A model generated the notes under the pieces. The model was not told the origin of the DNA. It worked only from the letters and a program-made list of their open reading frames with translations, and did not search any database. From positions 150,199 to 214,198 of IMG/VR virus record IMGVR_UViG_3300048924_000100: DNA of 64,000 nucleotides; one strand, given 5' to 3'. This document shows, piece after piece, positions 49,998 through 58,006 of this stretch; position 1 is the stretch's first letter, and the number at the start of each line of letters is the position of its first letter. The position numbers and the translations under genes were made by a program.

Positions 49998-50291
49998 GTG
50001 ATGACTGCCATTATTGCATCGCTAATAAGCGTTGGTTGTCTTTTCTTTTTCCTCGAAATGACCACTGGGCCATGGAAGTGGCTAGACCGTCTTACGGGTT
50101 GGGATGATCATCCTTCGCCTAAAGAGATCAACCAGATCCAACTGGACATATTGCTGAACCAGGAAGACCTCAGCGTTAGAGGCAACCGGGTAATCTGCAA
50201 CGAATGTTTACGAGAGAGCTGCGGCTTCTGTTTAAACGGCCCTGTGATACGTCAGGCACAAGAATTGTTAGATACGCGGGGTGAGCTATGA
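49998..50291 (+). CDS. Small membrane protein with Cys4 motif
   Basis: 97 aa; N-terminal TM; CNEC...C..C; ATGA overlap with the ligase gene. Confidence 0.55.
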   Translation: MMTAIIASLISVGCLFFFLEMTTGPWKWLDRLTGWDDHPSPKEINQIQLDILLNQEDLSVRGNRVICNECLRESCGFCLNGPVIRQAQELLDTRGEL

Positions 50292-52258
50292 ATGTACCAA
50301 ACATCTACGAGATGATGAAAGCTCTCCAGGAAGAGATCACTCGCCTCAACACCGAGTTCCACCAGAATGACAAGGAATTGATTCCCAACGCTGAGTTCGA
50401 TCAGAAGCAGCTACGGTTTGATGAGCTGTGTGAACTCTATCCGGACGTTGCCAAAAGTCTGGTTACCGACAATGCCCCTGTTCCCATGGCGGCTCCTGTT
50501 GGTGGGCTAGAGCTTGTGGAATTCAAGGAACCCATGCTCAGCCTCAAAAAGGCCACGAGTATTGAAGCCTTGGATAAATGGCTGGGTAAGCTTCCACCGG
50601 ATGTTGTCGTTATCTGGGAGTTGAAGCTGGACGGGTTGGCGTTGGACCTGTTGTATGAGTTCCGTCAATTGGTACGTATGTGTACACGTCGGGATGGTTT
50701 GTTTGGTGAGGATGTTACTCACTCGATTAACCTGTTCAACAACATACCCCTGACGCTCCCTCCTGGCTACCCTGACGAGTTTTCTATTCGTGGTGAGGGG
50801 ATATTGCCGTTTGTTGCATTCGAGGCCTACAACGAGGCTGTAGAGAAGCCTATGGTTACTCCTCGTAATGCGGCAAGTGGTTGGGTACGTACCAGTCGTG
50901 GTAATCAGAATCCCGAAGCTGTGGGCAAACTACGTTTTATTGCGTACGGCTCCAGTAATCGATTCAGCGCCAAGACCTACATGGACCAGCGGAAGATGTT
51001 CCGGGAAGCCGGGTTTGAAGTGTCACCTGTTCTCTCCCTGGAAGATCTCAAGGGTGGTGAGCGTGATGATGTCTTGCCTACTGATGGTGTAGTGGGTAAG
51101 GTCAACAACTTCGAAACCCAGGAAGAACTGGGCGTAACCAACAAGTTCCCTAACTGGGGGATTGCTTACAAGTACCCGGATGAAGAGGTGGAGGCAGTTT
51201 ACGACCGTACTATCTGGAAAACAGGTAAGACCGGTCGAGTTAACCCAACCATCCTCTATCACCCTGTAAAGGTGGGCGGTGTAACCTGTAGTCGTGCAAG
51301 CATTGACAACTACCACCAGTTCATGGAGCTAGGACTGCGTGAGGACTCCACCCTGGCGGTTCGTCGTAACAACGATGTTATCCCACGGGTTCACCGTGTC
51401 ATTGATCCTGGAGCCGGTGAGCGGGTTAAAGCACCAGAAGAGTGTCCAAGCTGTGGTAGCAAGCTCCGGCTTAAAACCAGTGATGCAAGCGCCTTTCTAT
51501 ATTGCGACAACATTACCGGTTGCAAGAGTCAGTTGCTGAATCGTTGTTTGGCTTTTGTTAGCCGTGGATGTTTGGACATTGATGGTTTTGGTCCAGTGCT
51601 GCTGGCTGAGCTTATTGACCAAGGTGATGTCGAGTATCCGGCAGATATCCTGTTTCTGGATGCGGCTACGGTTAACGGTAACGTTTGGGAAAGCCTGAGT
51701 AATGTCTGGTTCACCCCGTTCCACAAAGCAATCCTGGCACTGGGGTTACCTGGTATCGATGTTATCCGAGCCAAGAAACTAGCAGTGGCCATGAATAAGG
51801 TTGGAACCGACCAAGGCTACCGCAATCCTGTTAGCTGGATTAACAGCGAAGTAGTTATCGAATGGCTGTCCAATAAAGACAACCTGAAGAAAATCCATGG
51901 CTTCGGTGCTAAGTTGGCAGACCCAATTGTGGCTGCCGTGAAGACTGATGCTTTCGTTAATAACTGTCGTCGGCTGTTCAAACGGATTGAAGTGACTTAC
52001 AAGGAGAATGTCACCGAACGGAAGATCTGTATCACTGGGGACGTGGGTCTTCCACGCGAAAGCTTAAAGGATCTCCTGGAACTGGCGGGTATTGAATTGG
52101 CGGATAGCTTCACCAAGGACTGCCAGTTACTTCTCGTGGGGGAGAAGCCAGGTGAAAAGAAACTGTTAAAAGCAACCGAGCTGGATATACCTATGGTAAC
52201 TATCGCCAGGGTTTCCAGTATTGAAGACTTGATCACACAGATCAATAACCATAGCTAA
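50288..52258 (+). CDS. ligA: NAD+-dependent DNA ligase
   Basis: 656 aa. KLDG motif I, RGEG, TDGVVGK, IAYK, DVIPRV, zinc finger CPSC..C..C, HhH motifs, C-terminal BRCT. Confidence 0.92.
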   Translation: MNVPNIYEMMKALQEEITRLNTEFHQNDKELIPNAEFDQKQLRFDELCELYPDVAKSLVTDNAPVPMAAPVGGLELVEFKEPMLSLKKATSIEALDKWLGKLPPDVVVIWELKLDGLALDLLYEFRQLVRMCTRRDGLFGEDVTHSINLFNNIPLTLPPGYPDEFSIRGEGILPFVAFEAYNEAVEKPMVTPRNAASGWVRTSRGNQNPEAVGKLRFIAYGSSNRFSAKTYMDQRKMFREAGFEVSPVLSLEDLKGGERDDVLPTDGVVGKVNNFETQEELGVTNKFPNWGIAYKYPDEEVEAVYDRTIWKTGKTGRVNPTILYHPVKVGGVTCSRASIDNYHQFMELGLREDSTLAVRRNNDVIPRVHRVIDPGAGERVKAPEECPSCGSKLRLKTSDASAFLYCDNITGCKSQLLNRCLAFVSRGCLDIDGFGPVLLAELIDQGDVEYPADILFLDAATVNGNVWESLSNVWFTPFHKAILALGLPGIDVIRAKKLAVAMNKVGTDQGYRNPVSWINSEVVIEWLSNKDNLKKIHGFGAKLADPIVAAVKTDAFVNNCRRLFKRIEVTYKENVTERKICITGDVGLPRESLKDLLELAGIELADSFTKDCQLLLVGEKPGEKKLLKATELDIPMVTIARVSSIEDLITQINNHS

Positions 52259-53824: not shown

Positions 53825-54307
53825 ATGAGCAAGAAAGAACCCCCTATTACCTACAAGGTGCATACGGACGGCAGTGCGCTGGGTAACCCAGGTCCTGGAG
53901 GTTATGGGATTGTAGCGAGATGCGGAGACGAGGTTGTCACACTCTCGAAAGGTTACAAGCGTACGACTAATAACCGTATGGAACTCTTGGGCGTAATTGT
54001 AGCCCTTGAGACAAACGCTAAGCCCGGTGTACTGTTTGAGATCACCACAGATTCCATGTACGTGATCAATGGCGCTACCAAGTGGATCAGCAGCTGGCAG
54101 CGTAGCAACTGGATCACCTGGAAGACCCAGGAGCCTGTGAAGAACAAAGACCTGTGGCAGCGGATCGCTCCTTTGCTTAAAGCCAACAAGGTTAAGTTCT
54201 TCTGGGTTAAAGGCCATACGGGCGTACCGGATAACGAGCTGGCAGACAAGCTGGCGGTAGAAGCGGCTAACAATCCAACTGAAGTCGACGAAGGCTTCCT
54301 GGGGTAA
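53825..54307 (+). CDS. rnhA: Ribonuclease HI
   Basis: 160 aa; TDGSALGNPGPGGYG, TTNNRMEL, TDSMYV, VKNKDLW, WVKGH..N..ADKLA. Confidence 0.95.
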   Translation: MSKKEPPITYKVHTDGSALGNPGPGGYGIVARCGDEVVTLSKGYKRTTNNRMELLGVIVALETNAKPGVLFEITTDSMYVINGATKWISSWQRSNWITWKTQEPVKNKDLWQRIAPLLKANKVKFFWVKGHTGVPDNELADKLAVEAANNPTEVDEGFLG

Positions 54308-54623: not shown

Positions 54624-55547
54624 ATGGCTTTGAAGACTGATACTGAGTTTAAACCTGTTCTGTGCATCTATCACAAAGACTGTCTGGACGGCATCGGTGC
54701 CGCATGGGTGGTGTGGCGCCATTTCAAGAACATGGGTATTGACATCGAGTTGGTGGCTGCTGCTTACAAAGACAAGCTGCCGGTCGTCGATGGCAAGGTG
54801 GTTTACGTAGTTGACTTCAGTTATCCGCGCGATGTCATGGTAGAACTGTTAGGGCGTGCGCATGACGTGGTGGTTCTGGATCACCATACCAGTGCCAAAA
54901 GAAACCTGGAAGGGCTCTTCGTTGTCGACGAGAGTCATTCTGGCGCCATGCTGGCCTGGAAGTATTTCAATAGCACTCCTCCACCAGAAGGTTTGCTGTA
55001 CGTTGAAGACCGAGACCTGTGGAAGTTCAAATACCCGAATACCAACAATTGGGTAACCGCAGCGTTCTCCTATCCGTTCAACGTTGAGCAGTTCGATGCA
55101 CTGATGAACAGCGACCCACTGGACCTCATCCACGAGGGCAAGATCCTGTTGCGTAAGCACCAGCAAGACACCGGTCGTGTAGCATTGAACGCCCGCATGA
55201 TGAAGTGCATGGGGTATACGGTACCCGTGGTAAACGCCAACATTTTCTTTGCGTCTGACCTGGGCGACATGCTCTCCAAGGATTACCCGTTCGCACTGAT
55301 CTACATGGATCTACCACACGGACGTAAGTACTCCATTCGCTGCCAGAAGAAGTGTATGGACGTTTCCAAGATCGCCGAATACTTTGGTGGTGGCGGTCAT
55401 GCTGACGCCTCGGGTTTCTCGATCCGTTATGACGACAAGCGTTTTGCCCGTAGTCATGAAGTGCTCGACTATTCGTTGCGCGACAAGATCATGGCTTATC
55501 TGAAGAACCCAATCGTCACGCTGAAGTTTCTACTAGGGAAGAAGTAA
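54624..55547 (+). CDS. DHH/DHHA1 phosphoesterase (NrnB/nanoRNase-like)
   Basis: 307 aa; HKDCLDG, VVDFS, LDHH, EDRDLW, GGGGHADASGF. Confidence 0.88.
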   Translation: MALKTDTEFKPVLCIYHKDCLDGIGAAWVVWRHFKNMGIDIELVAAAYKDKLPVVDGKVVYVVDFSYPRDVMVELLGRAHDVVVLDHHTSAKRNLEGLFVVDESHSGAMLAWKYFNSTPPPEGLLYVEDRDLWKFKYPNTNNWVTAAFSYPFNVEQFDALMNSDPLDLIHEGKILLRKHQQDTGRVALNARMMKCMGYTVPVVNANIFFASDLGDMLSKDYPFALIYMDLPHGRKYSIRCQKKCMDVSKIAEYFGGGGHADASGFSIRYDDKRFARSHEVLDYSLRDKIMAYLKNPIVTLKFLLGKK

Positions 55548-55835
55548 ATGCGGGCAGTCAAATTCTTTCGTTACGCTGGGATCTGGCGTTATAAAGAGAT
55601 CGGCAAGGATGTGGCGGACAAGGTAGATACGCGTGCCCTGGAAAGCATCCTGGGGGTCATGGGTGGTCCGTTGGTGTATGTTTGCCGTGACACTGGTAAG
55701 CCAGAGATGGAGAAGCTGCGCATCGAAGTGCGTAACGGGTTTGTCGTCCGCGCTTCTATGGCGGAACACGACAACGTACCTTTTGCTGAAGGTACCGAAG
55801 TCGAAGAGTTCTACATTCGACCATTGAGCAATTAA
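55548..55835 (+). CDS. Hypothetical protein
   Basis: 95 aa, abuts the DHH gene stop. Confidence 0.6.
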   Translation: MRAVKFFRYAGIWRYKEIGKDVADKVDTRALESILGVMGGPLVYVCRDTGKPEMEKLRIEVRNGFVVRASMAEHDNVPFAEGTEVEEFYIRPLSN

Positions 55836-55848
55836 AGAGATGCGACTC

Positions 55849-56016
55849 ATGGAAAGCGATAACCTGTTCTTTGTAGAAAGTGATCGTTACGGGTTCGGGT
55901 ACCTGATGGCCCCAGAGCGTTATGACGATATCCTCATCGCCACCGAGCGGCTGAAGACCCGTATCCAATCAGGCGCCACCCTGGTGCGTGTGGAAGTCAA
56001 ACGTACCAAGGGTTAA
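55849..56016 (+). CDS. Small hypothetical protein (55 aa, absent from ORF track)
   Basis: Hand-translated MESDNLFFVESDRYGFGYLMAPERYDDILIATERLKTRIQSGATLVRVEVKRTKG; fills the gap between neighbours. Confidence 0.55.
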   Translation: MESDNLFFVESDRYGFGYLMAPERYDDILIATERLKTRIQSGATLVRVEVKRTKG

Positions 56017-56020
56017 GCAC

Positions 56021-56470
56021 ATGAAACCGGATTACAGTTACATCAGTGTGCAGCTTAAGTCAGAGATGCAGGCCGAGATCATTTCTACTCTGATCCTGGC
56101 GGGTATCTCTCCAGAAGCCAAACATGAACTACACGCCACCATGGTGTATGACGATCGCAGCATCGCAGCGCCGTTGTGCGACCTGGCGCCATCTTCCAAG
56201 GAATTCTCGGCGAACGTCATTGCCCTGGAAACTTTGGGGGACGGTCTGGTGTTCAAACTCACCAGCGTTGATATGCTGGAAGAGTTTCGCCGTTTAAAGG
56301 AAGCCGGGTATCAACACTCTTACGGCACGCCTTTGTTCCACATGTCGCTGAAGTATGACTTCGATAAGTATGACATCCTCGCGCTTAATCAGGCGTTTGC
56401 TAATTGGGGTGGTCGTACGCTGATCTTCAACAACGAGCAGTACGGTATCACGAAACCAAAGAAAACGTAA
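56021..56470 (+). CDS. acb1: Acb1-like 2H phosphodiesterase (anti-CBASS nuclease family)
   Basis: 149 aa from ATG 56021. HAT (H38) and HMS (H107) motifs 69 residues apart, as recalled for T4 Acb1 H44/H113; N-terminal YISV strand; LVFKLTS segment. Confidence 0.72.
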   Translation: MKPDYSYISVQLKSEMQAEIISTLILAGISPEAKHELHATMVYDDRSIAAPLCDLAPSSKEFSANVIALETLGDGLVFKLTSVDMLEEFRRLKEAGYQHSYGTPLFHMSLKYDFDKYDILALNQAFANWGGRTLIFNNEQYGITKPKKT

Positions 56471-56477
56471 CTCGGTA

Positions 56478-56528
56478 CTACTCCTACTCCCTTTATCGGG
56501 GAGTAGGAGTAGGATACCTTTATTTTTT
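56478..56528 (+). terminator. Intrinsic terminator closing the rnhA-DHH-acb1 operon
   Basis: Stem ctactcctactccc/gggagtaggagtag followed by a T-rich tract. Confidence 0.8.
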
Positions 56529-56857: not shown

Positions 56858-58006
56858 ATGAATACCAAGAACCAAGAAGTTGCCAACATCGCTTCCATGA
56901 TGGTAGCGGTCATCACCCAACTTCGTACTGATGGCGCACCGGAGCCGATTCAATTGGCTTATGCTAAAACGGTGATGATGGATCAGGAACAGGTCAATAC
57001 TCGTGACCGCCAGCCTGTGCTTCAACTGGTGAACAACCAGCTCGGTACCAAATGGTCTTTCAACCAGATCAAGAAAGCCGAGAACTTCGTCCAGAACAAT
57101 GAACCAATCAAGGTTCAAGAACTGAACGGTACTGCACAGGTCAATGTCTCCGGCCAACCTGCTGAAGCCACTTTCGTTGAGAAGGCTCCTCAGGTTGATG
57201 GCCACGTGCACCTGCAACAAACCAACAACGCAGAAACCACTGCGCCTGACCAAGCCGGTCAAACTTCTTCTATCAACTCCACTGCAAACGAACAGGAAAA
57301 CGACACCATGAACGCACAAGTAAACGCTACCTCCAACATCGCTGAAAACGTTAAAGCCTTCGCACTGGCCATGTCCCTGGTCGGCCGCAACACCGCTGAA
57401 CAACGCGCCGAAGCCTGGACCGCGTTCATTGCTACCTCGCCTGAACAAGCTGCTCTGTGGGCTCTGTTCTCGGCAACTGCTGACGCCACCAAGTCGTTCG
57501 ACGAGAACTTCGTCACGTTCAGCGAAGGCCTGGGCGAAGAAGAAGGCAAGACTCTGGTCACCAACTTCATGCGCTGGTCTGCAGCTAACCAGCCAAAAGG
57601 TGATGCTCACTACTCCGACAAGTCGCGTTACAGCCTGATGGGCGATCGTGACGAAGGCATTCGTACCAGCTGGATCGCAGTAGGCTCCGCAGTGATCGGC
57701 GGTGGTATGGAAGCATTCGCCCGTGGTGGTCTGAACGTCGGTTCGGCGGTCGGTACCGTAGTGGGTGGTGTTGCTGCATTCTTCGCTGGTGAGCAGGTTG
57801 ACCAGCACGTAGAGAGCCAGTTCGGTCGCTACGTAGTCGGCGGCATGATCGGTCTGGGCCTGGGTGGTGCTGGTGCGGCCCTGGGTCGTAGCGTCCTGCC
57901 TGGTAACCCACTGCTCGAAATGAACAACAACGTCGCTGCTGCACCGGCTCGTATCGAAGCTCAGCCTACCGCGCCACAAGGCTCGCTCGGCTTCTTCGGC
58001 ATGTAA
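56858..58006 (+). CDS. Early protein with C-terminal glycine-zipper membrane domain
   Basis: 382 aa, CAGGAG RBS, extreme codon bias; C-terminus aligns with 20642-20974 (GDR[ND][DE]G[VI] plus GxxxG helices). Confidence 0.75.
   Translation: MNTKNQEVANIASMMVAVITQLRTDGAPEPIQLAYAKTVMMDQEQVNTRDRQPVLQLVNNQLGTKWSFNQIKKAENFVQNNEPIKVQELNGTAQVNVSGQPAEATFVEKAPQVDGHVHLQQTNNAETTAPDQAGQTSSINSTANEQENDTMNAQVNATSNIAENVKAFALAMSLVGRNTAEQRAEAWTAFIATSPEQAALWALFSATADATKSFDENFVTFSEGLGEEEGKTLVTNFMRWSAANQPKGDAHYSDKSRYSLMGDRDEGIRTSWIAVGSAVIGGGMEAFARGGLNVGSAVGTVVGGVAAFFAGEQVDQHVESQFGRYVVGGMIGLGLGGAGAALGRSVLPGNPLLEMNNNVAAAPARIEAQPTAPQGSLGFFGM

Follow-up and report, generated by a model that had tools for sequence, protein, structure and literature searches.

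A gene for a 149-aa member of the Acb1 family of 2H phosphoesterases was identified at positions 56021–56470 (+ strand) of the window, i.e. the 64,000-nt stretch of DNA analysed here, which comprises the final 64 kb of a 214,198-bp IMG/VR virus record. The assignment is supported by the ORF list, the Pfam family PF23474, PHROG 755, an AlphaFold2 (AF2) model and matches to Acb1-type structures in the PDB. The gene belongs to a phage that encodes the characteristic components of nucleus-forming jumbo phages, and its product retains an intact and conserved catalytic tetrad. Judging from the analysis as a whole, it appears more likely than not that this enzyme degrades cyclic oligonucleotides and has an anti-defence function.

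The gene, its transcript and its phage

The reading frame starts at an ATG (position 56021) and ends with a TAA (56468–56470), as read on the + strand of the window. A Shine-Dalgarno-like AAGGG lies 8 nt upstream of this ATG, which is located 4 nt past the stop codon of the preceding small ORF. The same start methionine was found in all 17 homologues compared, which show 48–100% identity to the window protein. An alternative 160-aa reading starting at a GTG (position 55988) was discarded; it runs into the upstream ORF and was supported by none of the homologues. RNA folding revealed a stem-loop with a T-rich stretch downstream of the stop codon (56474–56518, + strand); it contains 19 pairs and has a predicted stability of −31.5 kcal/mol (z −6.8 relative to shuffled sequences). 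This stem-loop is the probable end of the transcription unit. It was not called in a consensus terminator scan, since the T-run begins ~10 nt past the stem.

The record corresponds to a metagenome-assembled virus with no isolate. It is 93% complete, has a 51% GC content, and its DNA occurs in root-metagenome runs. An earlier note, made from the window's letters alone, had described the source as a nucleus-forming jumbo phage, a description that proved well founded by gene content (the phage is known here from its genes alone). A 694-aa chimallin homologue is encoded at G000:C1:105724–107808, with 47% identity to that of RisingSun (over 95% of the length) and 46% to the EL ‘nuclear shell protein’ (tblastn E values of 0 to 1e-177). 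This ORF, which is matched by no Pfam model, was located by two means: its synteny with an RNA polymerase gene, and tblastn of the candidate ORF. Searches using phiKZ gp54 as the query (genome search, tblastn and phmmer) did not detect it because gp54 is too divergent. The chimallin gene lies directly upstream of an RNA polymerase beta′-like gene, the same arrangement as that of gp54 and gp55 in phiKZ. The genome also encodes a PhuZ homologue (G000:C1:97650–98540, E 3.6e-16), a protein matching PhiKZ_MCP (E 3e-138), a phiKZ internal head protein, split RNA polymerase beta and beta′ fragments, and a divergent family B DNA polymerase. The presence of chimallin, PhuZ, a phiKZ-type capsid and split RNA polymerases justifies the label ‘nucleus-forming’. 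A GroEL/Cpn60-like chaperonin is encoded outside the window (G000:C1:10456–12153), as occurs in EL; in Aphrodite1, a chaperonin gene (L023:6337–7896) follows the Acb1-like gene at a distance of ~2 kb.

Family assignment, catalytic motifs and predicted fold

PF23474 (Acb1) was the sole Pfam match of the window protein (score 32.7 bits, gathering threshold 27 bits; E 7.2e-8; residues 7–122), and precomputed annotations assign it to all 17 close homologues. No match to LigT_PEase or 2_5_RNA_ligase2 was found in Pfam at E ≤ 10. The protein also matched PHROG 755 (E 8e-18), a family labelled ‘RNA ligase’ in both PHROG and RefSeq. This label carries no independent information, since RefSeq gives the same one to T4 57B, the Acb1 prototype. 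Identity to characterised Acb1 proteins is only ~15–24%; BLASTP against T4 Acb1 gave 24% over 89 residues (E 0.029). When the window clade was compared with the T4/FBB1 clade using hhalign, the two aligned with 85.5% probability (E 5.6e-6) and with both HxT/S motifs in register. A single-sequence phmmer search against the PDB yielded spurious PPR-repeat matches only. It was the family profile that retrieved 9q2g, the only PDB sequence found in this way with both motifs aligned (E 0.0066). A Pfam E value of 7e-8 with a score above the gathering threshold, a PHROG E value of 8e-18 and fold Z scores of 12–14 place the match to Acb1 beyond chance. The window protein is thus a genuine member of the Acb1 family.

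The catalytic motifs H38-A-T40 (56132–56140, + strand) and H107-M-S109 (56339–56347, + strand) align with H44-x-T46 and H113-x-T115 of T4 Acb1, which form the catalytic tetrad of that enzyme (Hobbs et al., PMC9117128). Their codons were confirmed within the 149-aa reading frame, in which the two histidines lie 69 residues apart as the earlier note had reported; T4 Acb1 (152 aa; L015:5956–6411, − strand) has the same spacing between H44 and H113. The segments YISV (residues 7–10) and LVFKLTS (76–82), also pointed out there, are present and form beta-strands in the AF2 model. H38, T40, H107, M108 and S109 were unchanged in the 17 homologues. In an alignment of 133 family members, the histidines equivalent to H44 and H113 were invariant, the position of T46 was occupied by Thr in 132 of 133 sequences, and that of T115 by Ser in 97 and by Thr in 36. 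The HxS form of motif 2 in the window protein, a Thr-to-Ser change with respect to T4, is therefore the form that prevails across the wider family. The protein is probably catalytically active.

The AF2 model was built on the alignment of the window clade (pLDDT 85.3, pTM 0.81). In a Foldseek search against the PDB, the best match was the BCSR5 phosphodiesterase (9q2y/9q2g; E 7e-7, TM 0.71), followed by FBB1 Acb1 (7t26/7t27; E 2e-5), Arabidopsis CPDase and then E. coli LigT (E 3e-3). VIA-align gave Z scores of 14.4 for 9q2g (142 residues), 12.6 for 7t26, 11.4 for Arabidopsis CPDase, 10.2 for Deinococcus CPDase and 9.3 for LigT. Among Swiss-Prot models, the top two fold matches were the Acb1 domains of a Sphingomonas and a Caulobacter protein (in both entries, the C-terminal domain of a ~625-aa protein), while the best match in BFVD was the RisingSun ‘Anti-CBASS protein Acb1’ (TM 0.85). 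Since 9q2g and 7t26 score above CPDase and LigT, the outcome that the earlier note had named as speaking against its proposal, a best structural match to a LigT/ThpR-type enzyme, was not observed. Its proposal of an Acb1-like 2H phosphodiesterase is borne out at the family level by the PF23474 score, the hhalign comparison and the Acb1-type best folds, although the structural margin of the model over generic cyclic phosphodiesterases is modest.

Gene neighbourhood and spread of the family

All genes assigned upstream of the Acb1-like gene lie on the + strand. They include an NAD-dependent DNA ligase (50288–52258; Pfam DNA_ligase_aden, OB and BRCT; syntenic with EL gp122), an RNase H (53825–54307; PHROG 531, E 5.6e-51), separated from the ligase by a 499-aa ORF of no assigned function, and a 307-aa DHH/DHHA1 phosphoesterase (54624–55547; Pfam DHH and DHHA1; PHROG 4771, E 5e-83). 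Two small ORFs from the ORF list follow, of 95 aa (55548–55835) and 58 aa (55840–56016), neither of which matched any Pfam or PHROG family. The DHH gene is the first of a tightly packed run formed by DHH, orf95, orf58 and the Acb1-like gene, after which comes the hairpin. The spacers around the small ORFs are of 0–4 nt; the metagenomic relatives L020 and L022 carry one to four small ORFs at this place, and the EL annotation none. The order of the main genes is the same in EL (gp122 to gp126), in which the DHH–Acb1 pair corresponds to gp125–gp126. A DHHA1 gene is also found upstream of the Acb1-like gene in L020 and L022 (54% and 48% identity), and an RNase H gene precedes the homologue in EL, RisingSun, Aphrodite1 and L020. 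In RisingSun, Aphrodite1, Miami and ZPAH34, however, no DHH gene adjoins the Acb1-like gene, so that the DHH–Acb1 adjacency may be a matter of lineage synteny and not of functional coupling. The nearest solved relatives of the DHH protein are stand-alone dinucleotide phosphodiesterases of the NrnA/TM1595 type, although the matches are weak (E 2e-4 to 1e-2). This protein could break down the linear molecules that ring opening produces, or may simply be a replication/repair enzyme. The neighbourhood as a whole is one of nucleic-acid metabolism, with no anti-defence island. Downstream, a 382-aa ORF (window positions 56858–58006, + strand) shows no family match and has a Gly/Ala-rich, hydrophobic C-terminal third; a protein of similar size and no assigned function is encoded downstream of the Acb1-like gene in EL (gp127), L020 and L022.

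A profile search of 1.84 billion representatives retrieved 222 proteins at E ≤ 1e-3, 35 of them at E ≤ 1e-10. A FastTree phylogeny of 133 members placed the window clade (97% support) apart from the T4/FBB1 clade, in a tree that was star-like and poorly resolved overall. The window protein identified 79 phage records by tblastn, all with less than 60% identity. They included EL-like Pseudomonas phages (48%), RisingSun and Joad (45%), and pTD1/Aphrodite-like Vibrio, Miami-like Klebsiella and Aeromonas phages; many of the records were shared with the chimallin search. The Rak2-like giants GAP32, CBB, BF and Munch were also identified, and were absent among the chimallin matches listed; the family is therefore also present in jumbo phages with no nucleus-shell match in the chimallin searches. 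No copy of the gene was detectable in phiKZ, and a megablast search of the phage collection with this region gave no match. A tblastn search with T4 Acb1 retrieved 1,492 records, which, judging from the rows sampled, appear to be T4-like phages.

Some relatives found with the profile of the window clade are multi-domain proteins, and the ten scanned all pass the Acb1 threshold. Among these are fusions of the Acb1 domain with DarA_N (P0193, 912 aa), with the Thoeris inhibitor Tad5 (P0205, 391 aa) and with a GNAT acetyltransferase (P0135, 319 aa). DarA_N is the N-terminal domain of DarA, the ‘defence against restriction’ protein of phage P1. The DarA_N and Tad5 fusions therefore support the view that the family, taken as a whole, has a role in anti-defence. 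A Rak2-like homologue with 26% identity to the window protein, CBB_118 of Pectobacterium phage CBB (L018:2989–3435), is encoded between a NAMPT gene and a Sir2-like gene. This protein was detected by ESI-MS/MS in CsCl-purified virions, on the basis of seven unique peptides that gave a coverage of 60% (PMC5259590, Table 4). RisingSun gp120 is annotated in GenBank as a ‘putative structural protein’, a phrase that also appears in the RefSeq note on ZPAH34 gp036. The detection of CBB_118 in virions, together with these labels, suggests that some Acb1-like enzymes may be packaged and injected.

The gene's surroundings bear on the possibility that the protein is a housekeeping enzyme, either a 2′,3′-cyclic phosphodiesterase or an RNA-end-processing enzyme similar to ThpR/LigT or CPDase, that works with RNase H and the DHH protein in nucleic-acid turnover or repair. 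Such a role would suit a gene that shares a conserved run with DNA ligase, RNase H and DHH genes, and the 2H fold also fits the Arabidopsis and Deinococcus CPDases and LigT with the Z scores given above. The family's ‘RNA ligase’ label points in the same direction, but T4 57B bears it as well. Further, the alignment shows no counterpart of three residues specific to Acb1 (E141, W74 and W147). The proteins that match best in sequence and in fold are nevertheless all of the Acb1 type, the compact size of ~150 aa suits Acb1 and not LigT (~176–190 aa), and family members are found fused to anti-defence domains. Searches of the genome revealed neither an Rnl2-type RNA ligase nor RtcB, a result that weakens the case for a function in RNA repair (the search for Rnl1, PF09511, was run without a positive control). 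A housekeeping function is therefore considered unlikely.

Substrate pocket, proposed role and known relatives

Structural work on Acb1 identified Y12, W74, F107 and W147 as the aromatic residues that stack on the bases of the ligand. E141 reads the adenine N6, which explains the adenosine requirement, and residues 145–152 form a flexible lid at the C-terminus, which covers the bound ligand on closing. Rings of more than three bases are shut out of the T4 Acb1 pocket by clashes, and cA4 is not cleaved (PMC9117128). The residues of the window protein were mapped onto T4 Acb1 by alignment only, using MAFFT with the 133 family members and a focused MAFFT alignment of 11 sequences. Tyr7 (56039–56041, + strand) corresponds to Y12, a position occupied by Tyr in 116 of 133 members. 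Tyr101 (56321–56323, + strand) corresponds to F107 according to both hhalign and MAFFT, in a column where 124 of the 133 members carry Tyr or Phe. Two of the four stacking aromatics are thus kept in the alignment. E139 aligns with T4 E138, a Glu in 99 of the 133 sequences. The position of W74 is occupied by Leu69, in a hairpin four residues shorter, and is not conserved in the family. That of E141 is taken by Gly142, which is invariant in the close clade of the window protein (of the 133 members, 70 have Glu here and 12 have Gly), so the Glu that would contact the adenine N6 is absent at the aligned position. The C-terminal segment E139-Q-Y-G142-ITKPKKT (56435–56467, + strand) shows no equivalent of W147 in the alignment: a short, flexible, Lys-rich tail replaces the Trp-bearing lid, being ~4 residues shorter than in T4 and modelled with low confidence (pLDDT 62 for residues 141–149). 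As judged from these alignments, conservation appears to extend to the catalytic residues and to one half of the binding groove, but not to three of the five substrate-recognition elements of Acb1 (W74, E141 and the W147 lid). Since the elements responsible for the adenosine requirement and the size limit are not conserved, the substrate range of T4 Acb1 cannot be confidently transferred to the window protein.

These differences could indicate an immune-signal phosphodiesterase with a specificity unlike that of T4 Acb1, directed at cA4 or cA6, at adenine-free signals or at 2′–5′-linked ones. The Gly142 in place of E141, the lack of W147, the Lys-rich tail and the four-residue deletion at the W74 hairpin would be compatible with it, considering that steric clashes in the T4 pocket are what bars rings of more than three bases (PMC9117128) and that type III CRISPR is among the few defences known to act on nucleus-forming phages (10.1101/2022.06.20.496707). 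This idea, however, is a structural deduction from the alignment and from a C-terminus modelled with low confidence. Moreover, position 141 is Y, F or W in many family members, and this aromatic (Y141 in the window protein) may take over the stacking role of the lid. A change in specificity of this kind thus seems improbable. Similarly doubtful is a broader proposal that joins several of these observations, according to which the EL-like clade would hold an ‘open-pocket’ variant of Acb1. The absence of the adenine-reading Glu and of the Trp lid, the basic tail and the shortened W74 hairpin could, on sequence grounds, open the pocket to larger cyclic oligoadenylates of type III CRISPR systems or to adenine-free signals; the co-transcribed nanoRNase-like DHH/DHHA1 protein might act in series, digesting the linearised products, and the enzyme might be carried in the virion. 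Were this true, an enzyme carried in the virion, as CBB_118 is, could start to destroy the signal from the moment of injection, before the phage nucleus exists.

The reading that accounts best for the data is that of a compact, metal-independent 2H phosphodiesterase that, by analogy with the T4 and FBB1 enzymes, would bind 3′–5′-linked cyclic di- or trinucleotides in a U-shaped groove, with Y7 and Y101 stacking on the bases. Catalysis would rely on the H38/T40 and H107/S109 tetrad, with a ribose 2′-OH attacking the adjacent phosphodiester and the ring opening through a 2′,3′-cyclic phosphate to give a linear product with a 3′-phosphate. Presumably produced in the cytoplasm of the infected cell, the enzyme would lower the levels of CBASS signals and possibly those of the cA3 made by type III CRISPR systems, that is, of the signals that trigger abortive-infection effectors, a threat beyond the reach of the phage nucleus. 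The background that the earlier note gave for this role is correct as regards both the specificity of Acb1 (PMC9117128) and the action of cA3 and NucC in type III immunity against a nucleus-forming phage (10.1101/2022.06.20.496707). The nucleus-forming phage PCH45 is stopped by a type III CRISPR system with a cA3-activated NucC, through abortive infection (10.1101/2022.06.20.496707). Acb1 cleaves cAAA, and its authors proposed that it could counter type III systems that use cA3 (PMC9117128). Since the nucleus shields DNA but cannot stop abortive infection triggered by a diffusible signal, enzymes or sponges that remove such signals are a logical complement to it.

The anti-CBASS idea for a jumbo-phage gene is reasonable but is not new as a prediction. 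Novelty, implied in the earlier note, was overstated: UniProt already names chimallivirus homologues Acb1 (‘Anti-CBASS protein Acb1’ for the RisingSun, Miami and pEt-SU proteins, names carried over by BFVD), and the family is found in many jumbo phages. An Acb1 prediction is unsurprising given that current Pfam and UniProt annotations make it. A 2026 survey predicted acb1 in two freshwater jumbophages (PMC13573597). A review of the same year considers Tad1 the sole anti-defence protein described in jumbo phages and notes that jumbo-phage phosphodiesterases could ‘potentially disrupt’ such signalling (PMC13282480). The literature searched yielded no biochemical work on members of the jumbo-phage clade. 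If the widespread Acb1-like genes of chimalliviruses of the EL, RisingSun, pTD1 and Miami type are active, they would represent a second anti-defence mechanism of jumbo phages after Tad1, and would be relevant to selecting jumbo phages for therapeutic or biocontrol use where the hosts, e.g. Pseudomonas, Erwinia or Klebsiella, are rich in CBASS. The interest of the present gene is moderate to low unless its divergent lid and Glu region change the specificity.

Among its known relatives, the chimallivirus homologues EL gp126, RisingSun gp120, Miami gp080 and Aphrodite1 gp165 show 27–48% identity and bear the RefSeq label ‘RNA ligase’; the position of E141 is Gly in EL, as in the window protein, Gln in RisingSun and Glu in Aphrodite1. 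The best structural match, the 165-aa protein of the Burkholderia phage BCSR5 (9Q2G/9Q2Y), is deposited under the molecule name ‘Anti-CBASS protein Acb1’ and is 17–20% identical to the window protein. A literature search found no paper on the substrates of this protein, so that the match transfers the fold and not the function. The ThpR/LigT proteins and plant CPDase share the 2H fold and the HxT/S tetrad (Z 9–11), but they are larger (~176–190 aa), score lower in the fold comparisons, lack any significant match in sequence and have 2′,3′-cyclic phosphate ends as substrates instead of 3′–5′ rings. The characterised enzymes, T4 Acb1 (gp57B) and Erwinia phage FBB1 Acb1 (7T26/7T27), have in common with the window protein their membership of PF23474, the ~150-aa size, the compact 2H fold, the phage origin, the histidine spacing of 69 residues, the aromatics at positions Y12 and F107 (Y7 and Y101) and the Glu at E138 (E139). 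They are only ~15–24% identical to it, and the window protein falls in a separate, well-supported subclade, differing from them in the HxS form of motif 2, in the replacement of W74 by Leu within a shorter hairpin and in that of E141 by Gly. Their C-terminal lid is acidic and bears a Trp, whereas the tail of the window protein is short and rich in Lys. The gene context differs as well, with RNase H and DHH genes in the window and ipI and 57A in T4.
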